Below are positions 6,548 to 41,942 of a DNA stretch of 45,908 nucleotides, piece after piece (within the stretch, counting starts at the first letter, position 1; every line of letters starts with the position of its first letter). Both the position numbers and the translations under genes were made by a program. This stretch comes from Octopus bimaculoides. Taxonomy: Eukaryota. Location: positions 1,833,568-1,879,475 of the forward strand of contig NC_068986.1 of assembly GCF_001194135.2 (NCBI RefSeq), given 5' to 3'. Under the pieces are notes generated by a model that saw only the letters and a list, made by a program, of their open reading frames with translations, did not search any database and was not told the origin of the DNA.

Positions 6548-6712
6548 AGGTTTATTAAATATTCTAACCGTGACTAAATGTATTTTAAAGTGTTNNNNNN
6601 NNNNNNNNNNNNNNNNNNNNNNNNNNNNNNNNNNNNNNNNNNNNNNNNNNNNNNNNNNNNNNNNNNNNNNNNNNNNNNNNNNNNNNNNNNNNNNNNNNNN
6701 NNNNNNNNNNNN

Positions 6713-15200: not shown

Positions 15201-15723
15201 CACAGAAAAACCCGCGTTGGGCGAGATAAGTGAAACGTTCTAATGACACAAAGCAATCTCGGTACTACAATAAATAATTACATTCTAATTCTGTTTTGAG
15301 TACTTTTTCTTGTTGTTCGTTAACGTAGATGTACATATATTTTACCTTTTAGTCTGGAGAAAAGACATTACTTGGCCACCGAGAGTGATGTAGTGGGGGG
15401 AATATGTCATCTTCAAACTGAAAGCCTGGTCCGAATGCTTGTAATAGAGTGAATTCCGCTAAAAGCATCCGGAGGTGGCGATAAACCGGACGACTGGTTG
15501 TAGACTTCAGTCTATACATATATANNNNNNNNNNNNNNNNNNNNNNNNNNNNNNNNNNNNNNNNNNNNNNNNNNNNNNNNNNNNNNNNNNNNNNNNNNNN
15601 NNNNNNNNNNNNNNNNNNNNNNNNNNNNNNNNNNNNNNNNNNNNNNNNNNNNNNNNNNNNNNNNNNNNNNNNNNNNNNNNNNNNNNNNNNNNNNNNNNNN
15701 NNNNNNNNNNNNNTATATATATA

Positions 15724-17900: not shown

Positions 17901-18212
17901 ACTTTTTTTAAAAATTCAANNNNNNNNNNNNNNNNNNNNNNNNNNNNNNNNNNNNNNNNNNNNNNNNNNNNNNNNNNNNNNNNNNNNNNNNNNNNNNNNN
18001 NNNNNNNNNNNNNNNNNNNNNNNNNNNNNNNNNNNNNNNNNNNNNNNNNNNNNNNNNNNNNNNNNNNNNNNNNNNNNNNNNNNNNNNNNNNNNNNNNNNN
18101 NNNNNNNNNNNNNNNNNNNNNNNNNNNNNNNNNNNNNNNNNNNNNNNNNNNNNNNNNNNNNNNNNNNNNNNNNNNNNNNNNNNNNNNNNNNNNNNNNNNN
18201 NNNNNNNNNNNN

Positions 18213-23727: not shown

Positions 23728-24269
23728 ACATAAATATTATATAATTATATGTATATATCCATACATATATGTACATACCGACATCTATATGTATACATAC
23801 TAGCATATATGGGTACAGGACATCACACAAACACATTAAACACAATGAGAAACGAAAACATAAAGACGAGGACAGAAAATGAACTTTTTTTCGAAGAACG
23901 AAAAAATACAAACAGAGAAATGAGACATGCAACATAAAGAATATTACCCATCTTCAGTTGTCCCTGCTCCATCTACTCTGCGCTTCGAAGGCAAGGACAA
24001 TACGCGACTTCGTTGGAGCAGACCTTCCTGCAAGCAAATTAATTAAAATTTGGAAATTTTTGCGGAGAGTGAAAGTGTTAACAAGAACAGGACAGTGACA
24101 ACAAACTTTCGGGGCTGTGTGGCCAAGACGATAGAAAAATTATTATGTTTTTGAACGCGAAGTTAGGTGTGAATGAGAGAGAAAAAAATTGACGTCTTTT
24201 CNNNNNNNNNNNNNNNNNNNNNNNNNNNNNNNNNNNNNNNNNNNNNNNNNNNNNNNNNNNNNNNNNNNN

Positions 24270-26225: not shown

Positions 26226-28810
26226 TAGAACTCTGCAACGGGCCCGCTTTTCGTTCCGTGGATGTTGTGACCTCGGTCACGTGAACGCCTTGGAATCCGG
26301 ATAACCGGCCTTTTAAGTCCTGGCATTCGAGAAACAAAAAAAGAGATGTACTATGCTTTGATAATAGGTCTTCTCCATCAAAACTAACCTAAGACAAAAT
26401 AATAACAGCAGTACCAACGATATCGTGTGAAAAATTATTATTTCGACTTGACAGAAAAAGCAATCTTCGTGGAATACTTGCTTATGCGTACGAAATAGAT
26501 AACCTGTCTGAATTAGTGGCGTTACAAGGAAATGTGGGAGTGTGGACTATACCAGGAGATATCACCAGAGGAGGTAACATCACAATACAAGTCAATCCTT
26601 TGATACTTTTCGCGAAATGTTCCAGCAAATATTTATTGTTTTCATAACAAATCTCAATGGATTTGGTCCAGAAAAAAATACTAGAACTCCTTCTTCGTAT
26701 TTACACGAGATGACGTCAATAATGGATGGGAGACACCATCATTTACTGTACTGGGTGATAGCAAAACACTAGTGGCGCTGCCGTCTGAATTACCAAAACA
26801 TCAGAAGACAACTAAGAAAATGCTTAAAAATCAATATCTGTCTTATTCAAAGTATCACTTTCAGCATCTCTGAGAGAATAAATCTTGCGGTAAATAATTA
26901 TTAAAGTTTAAAACTACGTATGGCTTTATCCACACATCTAGAACTAAGCATGTGCGAGATGGCAATTCACAGGGATGTGAAAAAGAGTGAAAGTATATCT
27001 ATCTATTAAAAGCGCCTTTCAAAATATAACTATTAATCAGCTCTTTAACATATTTAACTTTGTTCAATTAATTATTACAAGAGCTTTATATTATTCCACA
27101 ATACTGGATGGGGAGCTTCAATTTTCATAACATAAAGTAGTTATTAGAAAGCTGACTTCGTTATTTTTAAAAGTGATTTTTCCTTTTGTAGGAAGTGCAA
27201 AACTTAATCAAACATTTCCTTGGGATGCGGGGCATAGGAAAGGCTGGGGAGCTATTCTCTTATCTTTTATCCTTTACTTGTTTCAATCATTTGACTGACG
27301 TTATGCTGGGGTATCGCCAGGACTTTTTTTAAGCCTACTACTATCGGAATATTTTGCCGAACCGCTTTATTGTCTTGGCGAGAGATAAAACCTGTGAATG
27401 CAAGATATCATAGGTAAAGGTCAAAGTTCGTGACCTTTTGACCTCCGGTGACCTTTTTACAGAATAAATTTGCTTATCATTTGCATGAACTTGTAGATCT
27501 TGACCAGGCAATCATTTTAAGTGGTCATTTGAAATATTTTGGCAAAGAGTTGCAAAGTTAGAGCTGTTTGAGTTTTCCATACCCCTAATTTTCTGCCTCC
27601 AGCTGTAAAAGTGGTGGGGGTCTTCCATCCCAGCTTCTTTTTTGCTGGCAACATGAAATTTCTGGCTTGTCAGACCCAGGGCTACATGAAAATACCCATT
27701 AAAGTAAATCACAAGGGGGGTGGGGTCGTGACCCCCCTCACTAGCCCATGGTCTAAAAGAAGTTGTATTCTTGGGATCTATTCTACTCTAATATTATAAG
27801 AAAAGTCATGTAAATTCGTTGGGTGGTTCGATGCATTTCTTAAAAAAAAGGTTCACCAGATTTCATTGATTATTCGCGCACGCACATGCACGCGAGCACT
27901 TATACGCAGACATACATACACACGCACATTGACACACATTCATACACACACACATGCCTGCACATGTACTGACGTACATACTGATGTCTACTGGGTTCAA
28001 AAGTAGGTGGGCTGATAGTAGGGAAGATGTGGATTGCATTGGTTTACATGTTAGTGACGGTAGGCATATATTGTTGATGTGGCAGTGGTTACATTGTCTT
28101 TGCTAATTGTTGTTGTTGTATACACACGCACACGAACACACACAATAGACACGCTTTCATCTGCTTAGTCTGTGGGGGTATTTCAACTGATCAAAATATA
28201 AACTCTCTAATGTCCATTTTGCCGTGAATATTCAAAATGCAAACTTATATTATTACATGTTTTGTAATTTAAATTGGGTGTGAAGTGAAACAATTGTAGG
28301 CAATGTAAATTAATTGATAAATTAATTTATACCCATTGAATCTAACTATTTTCAAGCTTATTAATAAATATATATATATGTATGACTATATATATATATA
28401 TATATATATATNNNNNNNNNNNNNNNNNNNNNNNNNNNNNNNNNNNNNNNNNNNNNNNNNNNNNNNNNNNNNNNNNNNNNNNNNNNNNNNNNNNNNNNNN
28501 NNNNNNNNNNNNNNNNNNNNNNNNNNNNNNNNNNNNNNNNNNNNNNNNNNNNNNNNNNNNNNNNNNNNNNNNNNNNNNNNNNNNNNNNNNNNNNNNNNNN
28601 NNNNNNNNNNNNNNNNNNNNNNNNNNNNNNNNNNNNNNNNNNNNNNNNNNNNNNNNNNNNNNNNNNNNNNNNNNNNNNNNNNNNNNNNNNNNNNNNNNNN
28701 NNNNNNNNNNNNNNNNNNNNNNNNNNNNNNNNNNNNNNNNNNNNNNNNNNNNNNNNNNNNNNNNNNNNNNNNNNNNNNNNNNNNNNNNNNNNNNNNNNNN
28801 NNNNNNNNNN

Positions 28811-34052: not shown

Positions 34053-34722
34053 ATCATCATCATCAGCGGTTAACGTCCGCTTTCCATGCTAGCATGGGTT
34101 GGACGATTTGACTGAGGACTGGTGAACCAGATGGCTACACCAAGCTCCAATCTGATCTGGCAGAGTTTCTACAGCTGGATGCCCTTCCTAACGCCAACCA
34201 CTCTGAGAGTGTAGTGGGTGCTTTTACGTGCCACCGGCACGAAGGCCACTGGCAACGGCCACACTCAAAATGGTGCATTTTACATGCCACCTGCACAGGA
34301 GCCCGTCCAGCAGCACTGGCAACAATCTCGCTCAAATGTCTTTTCACGTGCCAGGAATGAGACGTTGGTAATGATCACGCTCAAATGGTGCTATTTACGT
34401 GCCACCGGCACAGAAGCCAAACAGCTGGTGCTCTGGCAACGATCACGCTTGGACGGTGCTCTTAGTGATTTACTGGTACAGGTGCCATCACGATTTCACT
34501 TTCCAATGAAGGAGACATTGACATGGGGGCCAGTCATCGAATTTAGTTCGATTTCGATTTCACTTGCCTCAACAGGTCTTCACAAGCAGAGTTTAGTGTC
34601 CAATGAAGGAAAGGTAAGCATAAGTGGGCTGGCTACATCCCTGGCAGAGGCCTTGGATTTTGGGGTTGCCGAGTCTTCTCACGCACAGCATATTTCCAAA
34701 GGTCTCGGTCAGAAGTCATTGC
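34053..34722 (-). mobile_element. SINE/RTE-tailed repeat with (ATG)n tail and internal GTGCCACCGGCAC-type units; fragment also at about 32770-32892
   Basis: CATCAT tail, TTTCCATGCTAGCATGGGTTG and GGATGCCCTTCCTAACGCCAACC motifs. Confidence 0.65.
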
Positions 34723-36472
34723 CTTGTTATTGTATTATAACAACTACTGGCAGAACTGGATTTCTCGTCACATTGTCTAGTTATTGGAACACAGGCACAA
34801 CTGAATTCACTCCCTTGTTCTTTTTTTTCCCCCCGCCCTCTCTTCGGCATTAATTGTATCACATTATCAACTGCATAAAAGGACTAAATTCAATGATCGA
34901 ATACATTTTTATAATAAAAAAACAAAAAAGAAGAAACAGCAGTAAAAATTTGTCATATATTACAATTCACATACAATTAACAAATAATTACAATTTGTTT
35001 CTATTTACCAAGATTCTCTACTGTTTATATAATTACTGATATGAAAATTCAATGTCTTGTCAGCAAAGAAAAATAAACTTAGCAGAATCATGGTCAATGG
35101 ATGCAGGAAGAATAGTCATTTGTTTAAGACGCTTGTTTTATAATTACAGTGGTTAAGAGTTCAATCCCACTGCACAGAACCTGGAGTTGACTGAAGCGAT
35201 GTGAGTGAAATTTGATAGACGGAAACTGTGTAGCAGTCTACTGGAAGAACTGCTTCTTCTGTTTGTAGGTGGTTCTTATATCTGTTGCCAAGTTTAACAA
35301 AACCATATACCCAGTGCATTTCAGACGAGTCCACTATTCAGACCAGGTCTCTACACTGAAGATAACATCTTCCCATCAGCCTTGGGGGCTCTGAAAAGGC
35401 ATTATTGATGTATTCTTAGCCCTTCTCTAAGCTATAAAACAATTATGAAAGAGTTACTAAGTCACAAGAGAATTGTATTTTGTACGGCAATGACTTTGAA
35501 GTTTGGATAATCAGAAATGACAGATCTGTACATCACAATAATATACTGACATATCTTATGACACTTAAATGTCTTTAAAAAATGAGGAACTTGATTTATA
35601 TGTCCAAAGAATATTCCTAAGTTCCACTTTATTAAATCAGAATCATCAATTATCAAGGTTAGTAAAAACATATACTAAAGTACCTTTCAGTCAAAAATTG
35701 TTTTGTACTAGAAAAATCAATGTATTAGTGCATAAATATTTCGCCTTTTCTTTCGTGACCGAATATTATACTTCACCATCATCATTCGTTCTTTTTTTCT
35801 TTCTTAAAAACTGAGATTACTTTTAATGTTCCTGAAACAAAATGACACTAGCATTCTTTCATGTCATCATATACACGTTTCTTAGGAAGCAAAAGAGAAA
35901 GCTAGCATAGGTAGGTATTTTAGCAAATTTGACCATTTGCATTTCGTGTCAATAACACCATACCGTACTGAACCATTAAGTAGGAATGGAACATACAGAG
36001 AATCAGATAGACTAAGGCAAAAAAAATAATTTTAAGAAATAAAATATGGTGCATTGTTAGAACCCAGCACCTTTATTTCTAAGCTGTTTTACTTCAAGAC
36101 TGTAAATTCCTTGTTTATTCCAAAATGAACCACCAGCTTGTTTAGTCTCTCATTATAACTACGCTAAACATAATTAGGGATTCCAAGCTTCTGTATCTGG
36201 CATAAACTTGGACAAGGAAGTTTCTGGAATGTTTACTCTCCTGACAGTATTGCTATTTTCTTGTAAACATTTTGGTGTTCATTAAAACCATTTTTTACCC
36301 TTTTCGTACAATATAAATTTTTCACTTTATCATTATCCTTTTTCAAAGAGAAAAACTTAAAATATCAATTTTGATTCTTGTCAAGAAACAAAAACTTTAT
36401 CAACATTTCTAACTGTTCAATTAAGTTAGATTCTGCTGAATATTTTACCTGTAGCAGTTAATAAATATGCTT

Positions 36473-36491: not shown

Positions 36492-39395
36492 TCAGTCACA
36501 ATCAGACTCATCAGACAACAAGTTCACAACATCATTTAAGACTTTCTGTTTTTCTTTACATATTATTTGACTCGTTACAAAAATGCATTTTGACTTTCCA
36601 GGATGCTTTACTTGAATATGTTTCAAAATTTGCTGTCGTTGACTATTTTTAGCCTCACAGTGCGGACAGTGCACATATTTCAGCAAGTTCAGTTGCAAGT
36701 GCTGCAAGAGCTCAGCACTACATTGAAATATGAGGCCACAATATGCGCAGCAGAATTCTTTCTCCTCTGAGTGAACGGAATCATTGTGTTGTACAAACAT
36801 TTTGACAAGATTTGTGTTAAAACCACAAAGGGAACAAGAATAAAGAAGAAACATGTCTGTAGAGACATGAGTAGATAAGTGTTTTAAAAAGCAGTCAATA
36901 ACTGGAAATGCTTGGCCACAGTGTGCACAAACATAATCCTTTTTCTGTTTACTATGTACACAACGTAAATGCTCTACAAATTCATCTTGCACAAGGCTAG
37001 AAAAAGAACAATTTGAAAATCCACATATATAAAAGTTCCCACCATAGAGTTCATTTTTCTCTTTAGGATAGAGATTTACATTAATACTGGTAGTCTTTAA
37101 ATCGAGTGGCTCTGTTTTTATTTTAGTAACATTGTCAACATTTGAAGAAACTACTAAATTAGATTCCTCAGATGTGGACTCTTTTTTTGATATCACATTT
37201 GAATGTGGAGATTCCACAATCAACTTCCCAGATTCAGGTTCAGTTACTCTGGATAAATTATTTTCAGCAGGTTCAAACACTGTTCTATCATCAATCACAA
37301 TCGCATTAGAATCTAATGTTTTCTTTACAGACTCCAAAGTACTCTTAAGTGATTGTTGAGACGGTTTACTTGACTCCAAACAGTCACCAGACAAAGGCTC
37401 CACCAGATCCAAGTCAATAAACGTTCCATCTGATAGATTCCTCTCGACATCTCTCACAGACCAAACTGCTTCCACCTTAATGTTGTTGCCACAATCTGAC
37501 TGGTCAGGCATTTCTTCCTTTTCACCTGGTTGGAATAATAGCTTTGGATAAATCTCAGGTTTATGTCCAAGTAGTTTAGAAATTGTTTTATTGTTTATGA
37601 GTAAACTGTTGTAGGAAGTAGCAGGAGTCTGTTCCAAATATTTTGAAGTATTTTTGTCGGAAGAATTTGGTTTCAATTTTGGTTTGTAGACATTGATGCC
37701 AATTACACTTTGGTTTGACACAGGAGGGTTCGTTTTAGGTGCATCAGTCACCATAGTCTTATACGTGTAAATATTATTAGATGACGACACACTAGGAGAA
37801 ACTACATTCGAGTTGGTTGTCAGTGAATTAGACTGAACATTAGAGGGTGGGATATTTGATGGAGAATATATGTTTGAATAAGGTGTAGTTGCAATAAGAT
37901 TCATTACACCAGGCTCCAAAGATTGAGGGAATTTTGCATATGGCAGTATTTTGTATTTGGCAGTATTAACTGGTGAAACTACAGGTAGAGTAGGTGTTAC
38001 CAAATTAGGGGGAATAAAAAATCCTAAAATGTCTTGATTTTGGTTATTAACCTGAACATTGGTTGCAAGTGCATATGGAGCAAGGGAAGTGGTAGTTGCA
38101 GTTGGAACATTGGAAGCAAATGCCTTTGTAGCAGATGATTCAGTCACAGAAGTGAGAGGAACTGAACTTACAGGTATTTGTTTGTTTGAAGATCCAAAGA
38201 GAAGTGACTGGTAACCAAAAGAATTGACTGCGCCTGGAATAGTAATAATAATAGGTGACACAGCTTCAGAAACTTTGGCTGAAACTGGAGGACTCTGAAC
38301 TTCAGGTGTAGCACAAACGATTTGAAAATTCTGTGTCGAAGGTGTTTGTAAAGTGCCTAAATAATTTTTTCGTAATATATTTGGCAATATATTTGGCAAT
38401 AAAACAGGAGATTTCTTCTGAAGAGTTGCATATTTTTTCTGATTGGGTGAGTAAGACATTTGCTTTTGTGAAAGATTAACAGGTGCAGCTGTTGCAGGTG
38501 ATAAAATAGCAGGTGAATCACTTTTTGAAGATCCAGTAGAGGTTTTTTCCTTGTTGTGCTTGGCCATCTCTTGAGATGGAGTGTCAGTCGAGGCATCACT
38601 GATAATTAGAGAATTAGTTTGTCCCGGTAATCCATCTAATTTCAGTTGGCCGTCTAGTCACTTGACTGGCGGCACACACTGTTCTCTGAAGAACTGTTCC
38701 TCAAAACTCTTTCTTGGCTGACATGCCTGAAGATTATTTTTCTTTAAAATAGGGATCCGATTCAAAAATGTTTTCGCAGCAGACATACTTTTCACCATTG
38801 AAGGTGACTTTAGAGAAGACAGCTGAATGATTTCATGAGATGAGCAAGCAGTTTTGGTAGCAGTGACAGGTATAGGAGAACTTGGCTGTGGAGCAGGCGT
38901 TGAAGAGCTAATATTCTGTTGATCCACATGGGAATCAGTTACAGGAACTGATGCCACTTTCTCAGGGTTTACAATATCCTCAAAAGGAACAAGACTAAAT
39001 ATTAAATTCTTACTTGCATGTTTTACAGAATGGTGGCTTTTAATAGAAGTGACTTTAGAAAAATAGCCACGACAATGGAAGCACCGTAACAAGAAAGTAG
39101 TTGTAGCAGGAGTTTTACCTTCCAGGTATGGCTCTTCAAGTTGAAGCAGGAGTTTCTTATATTTCTTTTTATTTTCATTGTCTGGCTGATTAGTTGTAGC
39201 GATCCTTTTCTTGTTGAAAGAACGACACATTGAGATGTGTGCATCAAATAAGCCACTGTCATCTGTAGTGAATTTACAACCAGAACACCGCTGTACACCA
39301 TACTTTGACCAATCAACTGAACTCGCTGGTTTCGCTTTCGCATTATTTTCACCACTTTCTGCTGCCTTTGACTCGCCTCTCTCATTCAGATTCAT
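36492..39395 (-). CDS. Multi-zinc-finger (C2H2/C2HC) protein, 967 aa if the single in-frame TGA at 38660-38658 is read through
   Basis: ORFs 38658..39473 and 36492..38567 are in the same frame. The 90 nt between them translate without stops (LDGQLKLDGLPGQTNSLIISDASTDTPSQE). First in-frame ATG after the upstream stop is at 39395 (AAAATG). Fingers: CSGC..HISMC and CFHC..HHSVKH before the TGA; CGFSNC..HLRCVH, CAHC..HLSTH, CSLC..HNDSVH, CAYC..HLQLN (degenerate) and CPHC..HIQVKH after it, with an S/T/P-rich linker. Confidence 0.8.
38654..38660 (-). promoter_or_regulatory. UGA-CUAG leaky stop (readthrough) motif
   Basis: Minus strand reads GTC AAG TGA CTA GAC GGC. UGA CUAG is the established readthrough context of e.g. 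AQP4, OPRL1, OPRK1, MAPK10, LDHB and MDH1. Confidence 0.7.
38658..39395 (-). CDS. Short (terminated) product of the zinc-finger gene, 245 aa, two fingers
   Basis: ATG 39395 to TGA 38660-38658: MNLNERGES...EQCVPPVK*. Confidence 0.7.
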   Translation of the reverse strand: MNLNERGESKAAESGENNAKAKPASSVDWSKYGVQRCSGCKFTTDDSGLFDAHISMCRSFNKKRIATTNQPDNENKKKYKKLLLQLEEPYLEGKTPATTTFLLRCFHCRGYFSKVTSIKSHHSVKHASKNLIFSLVPFEDIVNPEKVASVPVTDSHVDQQNISSSTPAPQPSSPIPVTATKTACSSHEIIQLSSLKSPSMVKSMSAAKTFLNRIPILKKNNLQACQPRKSFEEQFFREQCVPPVK

Positions 39396-41222: not shown

Positions 41223-41942
41223 NNNNNNNNNNNNNNNNNNNNNNNNNNNNNNNNNNNNNNNNNNNNNNNNNNNNNNNNNNNNNNNNNNNNNNNNNNNNNN
41301 NNNNNNNNNNNNNNNNNNNNNNNNNNNNNNNNNNNNNNNNNNNNNNNNNNNNNNNNNNNNNNNNNNNNNNNNNNNNNNNNNNNNNNNNNNNNNNNNNNNN
41401 NNNNNNNNNNNNNNNNNNNNNNNNNNNNNNNNNNNNNNNNNNNNNNNNNNNNNNNNNNNNNNNNNNNNNNNNNNNNNNNNNNNNNNNNNNNNNNNNNNNN
41501 NNNNNNNNNNNNNNNNNNNNNNNNNNNNNNNNNNNNNNNNNNNNNNNNNNNNNNNNNNNNNNNNNNNNNNNNNNNNNNNNNNNNNNNNNNNNNNNNNNNN
41601 NNNNNNNNNNNNNNNNNNNNNNNNNNNNNNNNNNNNNNNNNNNNNNNNNNNNNNNNNNNNNNNNNNNNNNNNNNNNNNNNNNNNNNNNNNNNNNNNNNNN
41701 NNNNNNNNNNNNNNNNNNNNNNNNNNNNNNNNNNNNNNNNNNNNNNNNNNNNNNNNNNNNNNNNNNNNNNNNNNNNNNNNNNNNNNNNNNNNNNNNNNNN
41801 NNNNNNNNNNNNNNNNNNNNNNNNNNNNNNNNNNNNNNNNNNNNNNNNNNNNNNNNNNNNNNNNNNNNNNNNNNNNNNNNNNNNNNNNNNNNNNNNNNNN
41901 NNNNNNNNNNNNNNNNNNNNNNNNNNNNNNNNNNNNNNNNNN
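41223..41942. other. Assembly gap; other gaps at 6595-6712, 15525-15713, 17920-18212, 24202-24269 and 28412-28810
   Basis: N runs, mostly bordered by (TA)n or (TG)n. Confidence 1.

Follow-up and report, generated by a model that had tools for sequence, protein, structure and literature searches.

A conserved stem-loop behind a UGA-CUAG stop suggests programmed readthrough in an octopod zinc-finger gene

Why is a long zinc-finger reading frame of an octopus interrupted by one in-frame UGA, and does the stem-loop lying just 3' of this stop help ribosomes to pass it? The question is raised by a stretch of 45,908 nucleotides (nt) of Octopus bimaculoides DNA (assembly GCF_001194135.2, contig NC_068986.1, positions 1,833,568 to 1,879,475), hereafter the window, whose minus strand carries an uncharacterised gene with C2H2-like fingers. 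All positions given below are those of the window, which in assembly GCA_001194135.2 belongs to chromosome CM046606.1. A preliminary description, made from the letters of this DNA, had pointed out the stem-loop and interpreted it as a stimulator of stop-codon readthrough. Comparison of the locus among octopods leads us to propose, with a probability of roughly 60%, that the hairpin and the UGA-CUAG context together form a programmed readthrough cassette. The earlier interpretation of the stem as the stimulator is partly supported by these comparisons.

The gene occupies a single minus-strand frame that begins with ATG 39395, ends with the stop 36494-36492 and contains one interruption, the TGA at 38660-38658. 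The upstream open reading frame (ORF-A), the in-frame spacer behind the stop and the downstream open reading frame (ORF-B) look like one exon of about 2.9 kb (36492-39395). A candidate splice acceptor AG (uucuucucuuuccag/g; the slash marks the junction) is located on the minus strand at 39583-39582, ~185 nt upstream of the ORF-A ATG, and is conserved in a fourth Octopus (L002). Orthologous loci from O. sinensis (L001), this fourth Octopus from Logan assemblies, Argonauta hians (L003) and O. vulgaris (L004) were compared with that of O. bimaculoides; the word-indexed orthologue searches returned octopod sequences only. The TGA falls in one alignment column in the five octopod assemblies, Argonauta included, and the CTAGAC behind it is identical in all of them. 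The two codons before the stop are variable (GTC AAG, ATC AAG or GCC ACG), and the CTAGAC after it is invariant. With stop and context identical in five assemblies, neither an error of sequencing nor a pseudogene of recent origin can account for the interruption. The preliminary description had called the stop leaky, and the conserved UGA-CUAG is indeed the best-characterised leaky context (Loughran et al. 2014, PMC4132726).

The selection acting on the gene was estimated from nonsynonymous (dN) and synonymous (dS) divergence by the Nei-Gojobori method. The two halves align throughout, all indels between species are in frame, and coding selection is evident on both sides of the stop, with dN/dS of 0.28-0.56 in ORF-A, 0.39-0.56 in the middle of ORF-B and 0.09-0.23 in the finger cluster. 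Between Octopus and Argonauta, dS amounts to 1.03-1.38 in these three parts but to 0 over the 30 spacer codons behind the stop, with no synonymous differences on 17.8 synonymous sites; dN in these codons is 0.25, like the rest of the gene. The amino acids of the spacer change freely, with 9 of 25 differing between Octopus and Argonauta, and the codons that keep their amino acid are identical in 16 of 16 cases, against 59.5% gene-wide (Fisher p = 3e-4). Given a gene-wide proportion of synonymous differences of ~0.6, hand arithmetic puts the rough probability of finding none below 1e-6. The 75 nt from the stop are the least divergent of 2332 segments along the gene (7 differences in 60 aligned bases, compared with 34% overall), with a divergence lower than in the zinc fingers. 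Since dS is 0 while the amino acids vary, the constraint acts on the RNA and not on the peptide. The spacer is open in frame 0 in both genera, with 3-4 stops in each of the other two frames; its only indel measures 15 nt, and the frozen synonymous block ends exactly at AUG 38567. The synonymous-site constraint that the preliminary description had named as a check on the stem is found here.

The stem itself was recovered with the bases and pairing first described. On the minus strand, ACTGAAATTAGA at 38646-38635 (+12 to +23 after the stop) binds TCTAATTATCAGT at 38610-38598 through 12 Watson-Crick pairs, with A38603 bulged. RNAfold places this helix in the minimum free energy (MFE) and the centroid structures of 60-nt, 121-nt and 321-nt folds. 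The 60-nt fold reaches -17.2 kcal/mol with a z-score of -3.67 (0 of 200 dinucleotide shuffles as good), a value inflated because the ends were picked post hoc; the z-score is -1.94 for 121 nt (10 of 200 shuffles as good) and -1.03 for 321 nt. A scan of the whole window revealed that 3% of all 60-nt segments in the 45.9 kb, and 1.5% of GC-matched ones, fold equally well. Against codon-preserving controls, the comparison suggested with the original observation, the fold proved better than the shuffles in both genera: synonymous-codon resampling and codon-order permutation gave p = 0.0055 and p = 0.0065 in Octopus, and p = 0.0055 and p = 0.0005 in Argonauta, respectively. Judged on one sequence alone, the hairpin is moderately unusual, not extraordinary. 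It is raised above chance by its conservation, that is, by the 12 pairs in five octopods and the zero synonymous differences after the stop.

All 12 stem pairs are kept in the five octopods, and RNAalifold finds the helix in all five; the hairpin has been retained since Octopus and Argonauta diverged. The 5' arm of Argonauta is ACUGGAAUUAGA (L003 6759-6770) and its 3' arm is UCUAAUU(U)CCAGU (L003 6780-6792). Three differences separate the arms of the two genera: two of them convert the A38642-U38602 pair into G-C in a compensatory manner, the third turns the bulged A into U, and zero pairs are broken. The 15-nt in-frame deletion of Argonauta affects nothing but the loop, leaving 9 of its 24 nt and an intact stem. 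The first pair stands at +12, behind an 11-nt spacer, in both Octopus and Argonauta, and the Argonauta stem belongs to the MFE structure at -13.3 kcal/mol. The apical 5-bp helix of the loop is Octopus-specific and no conserved part of the element. For covariation, which had also been put forward as a check, the structure count gives 100% paired cells with one compensatory pair and eleven invariant pairs; the shuffle control (109 of 500) is powerless with five sequences, so that the covariation is suggestive, not statistical.

Several further pairings around the stem were compared between the genera. The proposed extension of the stem by GGC/GCC holds in Octopus, where GGC 38651-38649 can pair with GCC 38594-38592, but GGC is AGC in Argonauta and one of the three pairs is lost. 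The alternative AGATGGA/TCCATCT pairing mentioned in the preliminary description falls away, with its AGATGGA lying inside the 15-nt deletion of Argonauta and its TCCATCT forming a local conserved hairpin with AGATGG instead. The six pairs of this second hairpin (38564-38579) are invariant in the five species, with one loop G changed to C in Argonauta, and it is possibly a further part of the readthrough cassette. Two other candidates were rejected. For a pseudoknot between the loop and downstream sequence, only 4-nt complementarities differing between the two genera were seen by eye. A stop-codon hairpin at 38673-38649 (GCCGC.AGUC-AAGU-GACU.G.CGGC), which pairs the G and A of the UGA, is formed in the four Octopus sequences only, and 5 of its 9 pairs are broken in Argonauta.

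Table 1 Positions of the gene, the stop and the RNA elements in the window
Feature	Positions	Strand	Description
ORF-A	38661..39395	minus	245 codons, ATG 39395 to AAG 38663-38661; N-terminal pair of C2H2-like fingers
In-frame UGA between ORF-A and ORF-B	38658..38660	minus	Same alignment column in five octopods
CUAGAC directly 3' of the UGA (UGA-CUAG leaky-stop motif)	38652..38657	minus	Invariant in five species
In-frame spacer, block under synonymous-site constraint	38568..38657	minus	30 codons (25 in Argonauta)
5' arm ACUGAAAUUAGA	38635..38646	minus	A38642 is G in Argonauta
Loop, 24 nt	38611..38634	minus	Octopus apical 5-bp helix, 38633-38629 with 38615-38611; 9 nt in Argonauta
3' arm UCUAAUU(A)UCAGU, bulged A38603	38598..38610	minus	C in place of U38602 and a bulged U in Argonauta
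Second hairpin CCAUCU-CAAG-AGAUGG	38564..38579	minus	3' arm holds AUG 38567-38565, the annotated ORF-B start
ORF-B	36492..38567	minus	691 codons from ATG 38567; C-terminal C2H2 finger cluster; proposed readthrough extension

The features that mark programmed readthrough at the sequence level, namely a conserved stop, an open coding extension and a UGA-CUAG context, occur together at this locus. UGA-CUAG is the motif common to experimentally confirmed vertebrate readthrough genes; UGA-CUA alone gives ~1.5% readthrough, and OPRL1, which has additional flanking signals, reaches ~31% (PMC4132726). A stem-loop stimulator is expected as a stable helix ~6-12 nt after the stop, and the octopod helix, with -17.2 and -13.3 kcal/mol in the two genera, follows at 11 nt. 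About 11-12 nt following the codon in the A site lie within the mRNA entry channel, and the stimulatory structures of Moloney murine leukemia virus (MoMLV), Venezuelan equine encephalitis virus (VEEV), Sindbis virus (SINV) and Colorado tick fever virus (CTFV) follow spacers of at least 8 nt (PMC13517186). With its first pair at +12, the octopod stem would lie at the channel mouth and is therefore positioned where such elements act.

At UGA 38660-38658 most ribosomes would stop translation, and their product would be the N-terminal protein of 245 aa. A minority may decode the UGA by a near-cognate tRNA, the UGA-CUAG context presumably weakening its recognition by the release factor eRF1. With the UGA in the A site, the 12-bp stem 11 nt downstream would stand at the mouth of the mRNA entry channel and may tip the competition further to the tRNA. 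Readthrough would append the 30 linker codons and the 691-aa part with the finger cluster, giving a minor full-length protein of 967 aa. The sequences show the stop with its context and frame, the coding selection on both halves, the conserved helix and the RNA-level constraint behind the stop; the readthrough, its level and the action of the stem, rather than its primary sequence, as the stimulator are inferred. If readthrough is true, in-frame peptides from LDGQLKLDGLPGQTNSLIISDASTDTPSQE are expected.

The architecture predicted for the 967-aa product is that of a distant homologue encoded without a stop. An exhaustive profile search with the ORF-A alignment against 1.84 billion representative proteins identified two further homologues only, P0007 and P0008. 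P0007 comprises 2053 aa in one uninterrupted single-exon genomic ORF (L005 3001-9162; ENA ERZ21867824, contig ctg119892l), in which residues 108-250 correspond to the N-terminal domain and residues 1150-1330 to the C-terminal finger cluster. Compared with the octopod gene, its low-complexity middle is far longer, and a long tail is added at the C-terminus. Argonauta is the closer relative, and no alignment to P0007 is obtained for the surroundings of the octopod stop. P0008 and a further homologue, P0009, come from Logan runs. A search with the squid-like N-terminal domain found no further orthologue, and a scan of Joint Genome Institute (JGI) metagenomes for the motif found nothing. Pfam holds no family for ORF-A or P0007 and yields only a sub-threshold zf-Di19 match for ORF-B. 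The protein collections searched contain neither a record of the exact ORF-A protein of the window nor a fused ORF-A/ORF-B protein. On the transcript side, the Logan contigs L002, L006 and L007 run collinearly with the genome and are not identifiable as cDNA; L002 is not treatable as cDNA because it reaches upstream beyond the likely acceptor and lacks a poly(A) tail.

Several observations weigh against a readthrough cassette. The stem is AU-rich and modest, and its -17 kcal/mol in Octopus counts the non-conserved apical helix, compared with -13 in Argonauta. Inside the ORF, 0.7% of the 60-nt segments are as stable, at three or four separate places. The covariation amounts to one event among five sequences, four of them nearly identical, with an uninformative shuffle control. 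The constraint extends past the stem to AUG 38567, and something beyond the helix is conserved too. Every public annotation makes two proteins of the gene and places the ORF-B start at AUG 38567: in O. bimaculoides, O. sinensis, O. vulgaris and Argonauta hians the locus appears as two unnamed proteins (244-248 aa and 425-691 aa) or as the downstream ORF only. Finally, the bases of the stem also satisfy a GT..AG pair, a pyrimidine tract, CUAAU motifs and a length divisible by three.

This last observation leads to the one specific alternative that deserves the first check, an exitron. A 63-nt in-frame micro-intron at 38661-38599 (CAA/GUGACUAG...UUCUCUAAUUAUCAG/U) would remove the UGA and join ORF-A to ORF-B in frame (..PPVN/DAS..), with the hairpin regulating the use of the 3' splice site. 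The GT (38660-38661) and AG (38599-38600) enclose a multiple of three, and Argonauta has a matching GT and AG 48 nt apart (L003 6744-6791), again a multiple of three, although spliceosomal introns are hardly ever shorter than such a length. Pyrimidines make up 10-11 of the 14 nt before the AG, two CUAAU motifs resemble branch points, and the AG and its tract fall within the conserved 3' arm. A crude scan across the whole ORF for donor/acceptor pairs that are at least this good, 45-120 nt apart and a multiple of three in length turned up no other, and splicing would explain the nucleotide-level constraint and the preserved frame equally. The donor, however, appears weak: it has no G at -1 (A in Octopus, C in Argonauta) and no G at +5 (C), and it scores 1.05 bits in Octopus and -0.53 in Argonauta, excluding the GT, on a rough position weight matrix. 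Its GUGA at +1 to +4 is automatic for any G before UGA. Splicing does not predict the exact CUAG (chance ~1 in 256), the open frame 0 inside the supposed intron or the constraint 30 nt past the AG; the junction is used by no gene model, and its fused product is missing from the protein collections named above. We regard this micro-intron as unlikely. Still less probable is its combination with readthrough in a two-way switch, where the hairpin would promote UGA-CUAG readthrough and mask the branch point, pyrimidine tract and AG of the 63-nt micro-intron containing the stop. The full-length factor would then arise by recoding or by regulated removal of a stop that an ancestrally uninterrupted gene acquired in the octopod lineage.

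The remaining explanations differ in what they make of the conserved block. Were it the substrate structure of an adenosine deaminase acting on RNA (ADAR), A-to-I editing would convert UGA to UGG (Trp) in a fraction of the transcripts. Such an event is plausible in a coleoid; coding sequences are edited massively in these animals, edited sites are typically flanked by frozen synonymous sites as at the octopod stop, and in Octopus the A of the UGA can pair in the small hairpin at 38673-38649. This hairpin is the one broken at 5 of 9 pairs in Argonauta, so a conserved duplex at the stop is not found; no long duplex or inverted repeat within ~1 kb to each side involves the UGA (38658), the stop is not enclosed by the conserved stem, which follows 11 nt downstream, and CUAG is not predicted. 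ADARs least favour a 5' G neighbour, which the A of this UGA has. Stop-loss editing is recognised in cephalopod editome pipelines, although the case there is UAG to UGG (PMC8382921). Editing of this stop appears very improbable to us. Two separate cistrons would let ORF-B start at AUG 38567 by an internal transcription start, reinitiation or internal entry, with the conserved 90 nt as a leader or control element. The Met at 38567 is conserved in five species, the constraint stops exactly at this AUG, all annotations begin ORF-B there, and its context in Octopus includes a purine at -3 as well as G at +4. At -3, however, Argonauta has C, the homologue P0007 is one polypeptide, UGA-CUAG is not predicted, and reinitiation after a 245-codon ORF is not expected. 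Coincidences would be needed as well, with a shared frame (1 in 3), an indel divisible by three (1 in 3) and 25-30 stop-free codons against 3-4 stops in the other frames, and we give two cistrons little chance. The hairpin could also be incidental, the conservation being caused by another constraint such as a protein-binding primary-sequence motif, for example the repeated UCUAAUU. The single compensatory event, the hairpins of similar energy elsewhere in the ORF and z-scores of only -1 to -2 in larger folds agree with this, and some structured candidates such as SACM1L and ACP2 show little readthrough in reporters (PMC4132726). Nevertheless, the arm differences between Octopus and Argonauta break no pair, the loss of 15 nt from the loop leaves the stem intact, and the distance from stop to stem is identical in both genera; an incidental hairpin is a poor prospect. 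Selenocysteine at the UGA has practically no likelihood. A conserved in-frame UGA with a nearby 3' stem-loop would suit it, and adjacent loops help some selenocysteine sites (PMC4132726), but no selenocysteine insertion sequence (SECIS) or other Rfam family was found with E up to 1 between 33500 and 40000, an interval spanning the entire exon plus ~3 kb beyond ORF-B, and the UGA sits in a poorly conserved linker with no Cys or selenocysteine homologue to align.

The proposed readthrough cassette resembles known systems in different respects. Drosophila kelch and headcase share the layout in which a long conserved ORF, divided by one internal stop, yields a short product and a full-length one of much greater size, with a 3' stem-loop implicated; these genes are unrelated to the octopod one, their contexts are not CUAG, and the octopod stem of 12 bp is much smaller. 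The kelch stop is UGA, while that of headcase is UAA, not UGA as in the preliminary description, with a stem-loop of ~80 nt. Viral UGA stimulators have spacers of at least 8 nt, and alphavirus nsP3/nsP4 (VEEV, SINV) and CTFV show the same order of UGA, C(UA), spacer and a stem-loop at the entry channel (Firth et al. 2011, reviewed in PMC13517186). The viral structures are longer and more stable, whereas in the octopods the gene is cellular, the spacer measures 11 nt and the stem is rich in AU. Vertebrate OPRL1, OPRK1, AQP4 and MAPK10 have the identical UGA-CUAG, conserved across orthologues (PMC4132726). They also share conservation at the nucleotide rather than the amino-acid level just 3' of the stop and an in-frame extension with a coding signature. 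Their extensions, however, span 13 to ~30 residues and most of these genes are without a predicted 3' structure, whereas the octopod extension of 721 codons holds the main finger cluster and would be a molluscan case. The mammalian candidates ACP2 and SACM1L are alike in a conserved stem-loop a few nt 3' of the UGA (42 nt in ACP2, starting 6 nt after the stop); they have no CUAG and show little readthrough in reporters (PMC4132726), and a conserved 3' stem is therefore no guarantee of stimulation. Exitrons share the GT..AG, the length divisible by three, the position inside a large coding exon and the apparently weak splice sites, but a leaky stop is no part of their definition, and 48-63 nt would be unusually short.

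Elsewhere in the window, six assembly gaps (N runs) are located at 6595-6712, 15525-15713, 17920-18212, 24202-24269, 28412-28810 and 41223-41942. These gaps explain the low-GC bins and most long artefactual ORFs of the mechanical ORF list, and a (TA)n tract abuts the last of them. Downstream of ORF-B, in a region where identity to O. sinensis is still 92%, the opposite (plus) strand carries an ORF of 211 codons (34218-34853); it matches no Pfam family and probably represents 3' untranslated region or chance. A tRNA scan of the window found none.

Cephalopods are the textbook case of proteome diversification via RNA editing. A full-text search with 'stop codon readthrough' and 'cephalopod' found no paper on stop-codon readthrough in these animals. 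The analysis flags an annotation error, by which the gene is split into two unrelated 'hypothetical proteins' in four public genome annotations. If readthrough is confirmed, its 70-nt cassette would be a compact one for testing the joint action of context and structure, and the UGA-CUAG rule would reach from vertebrates to molluscs. The octopod gene would then join kelch as an example of a stop that controls access to an entire half of a protein, here the DNA-binding half of one resembling a transcription factor.

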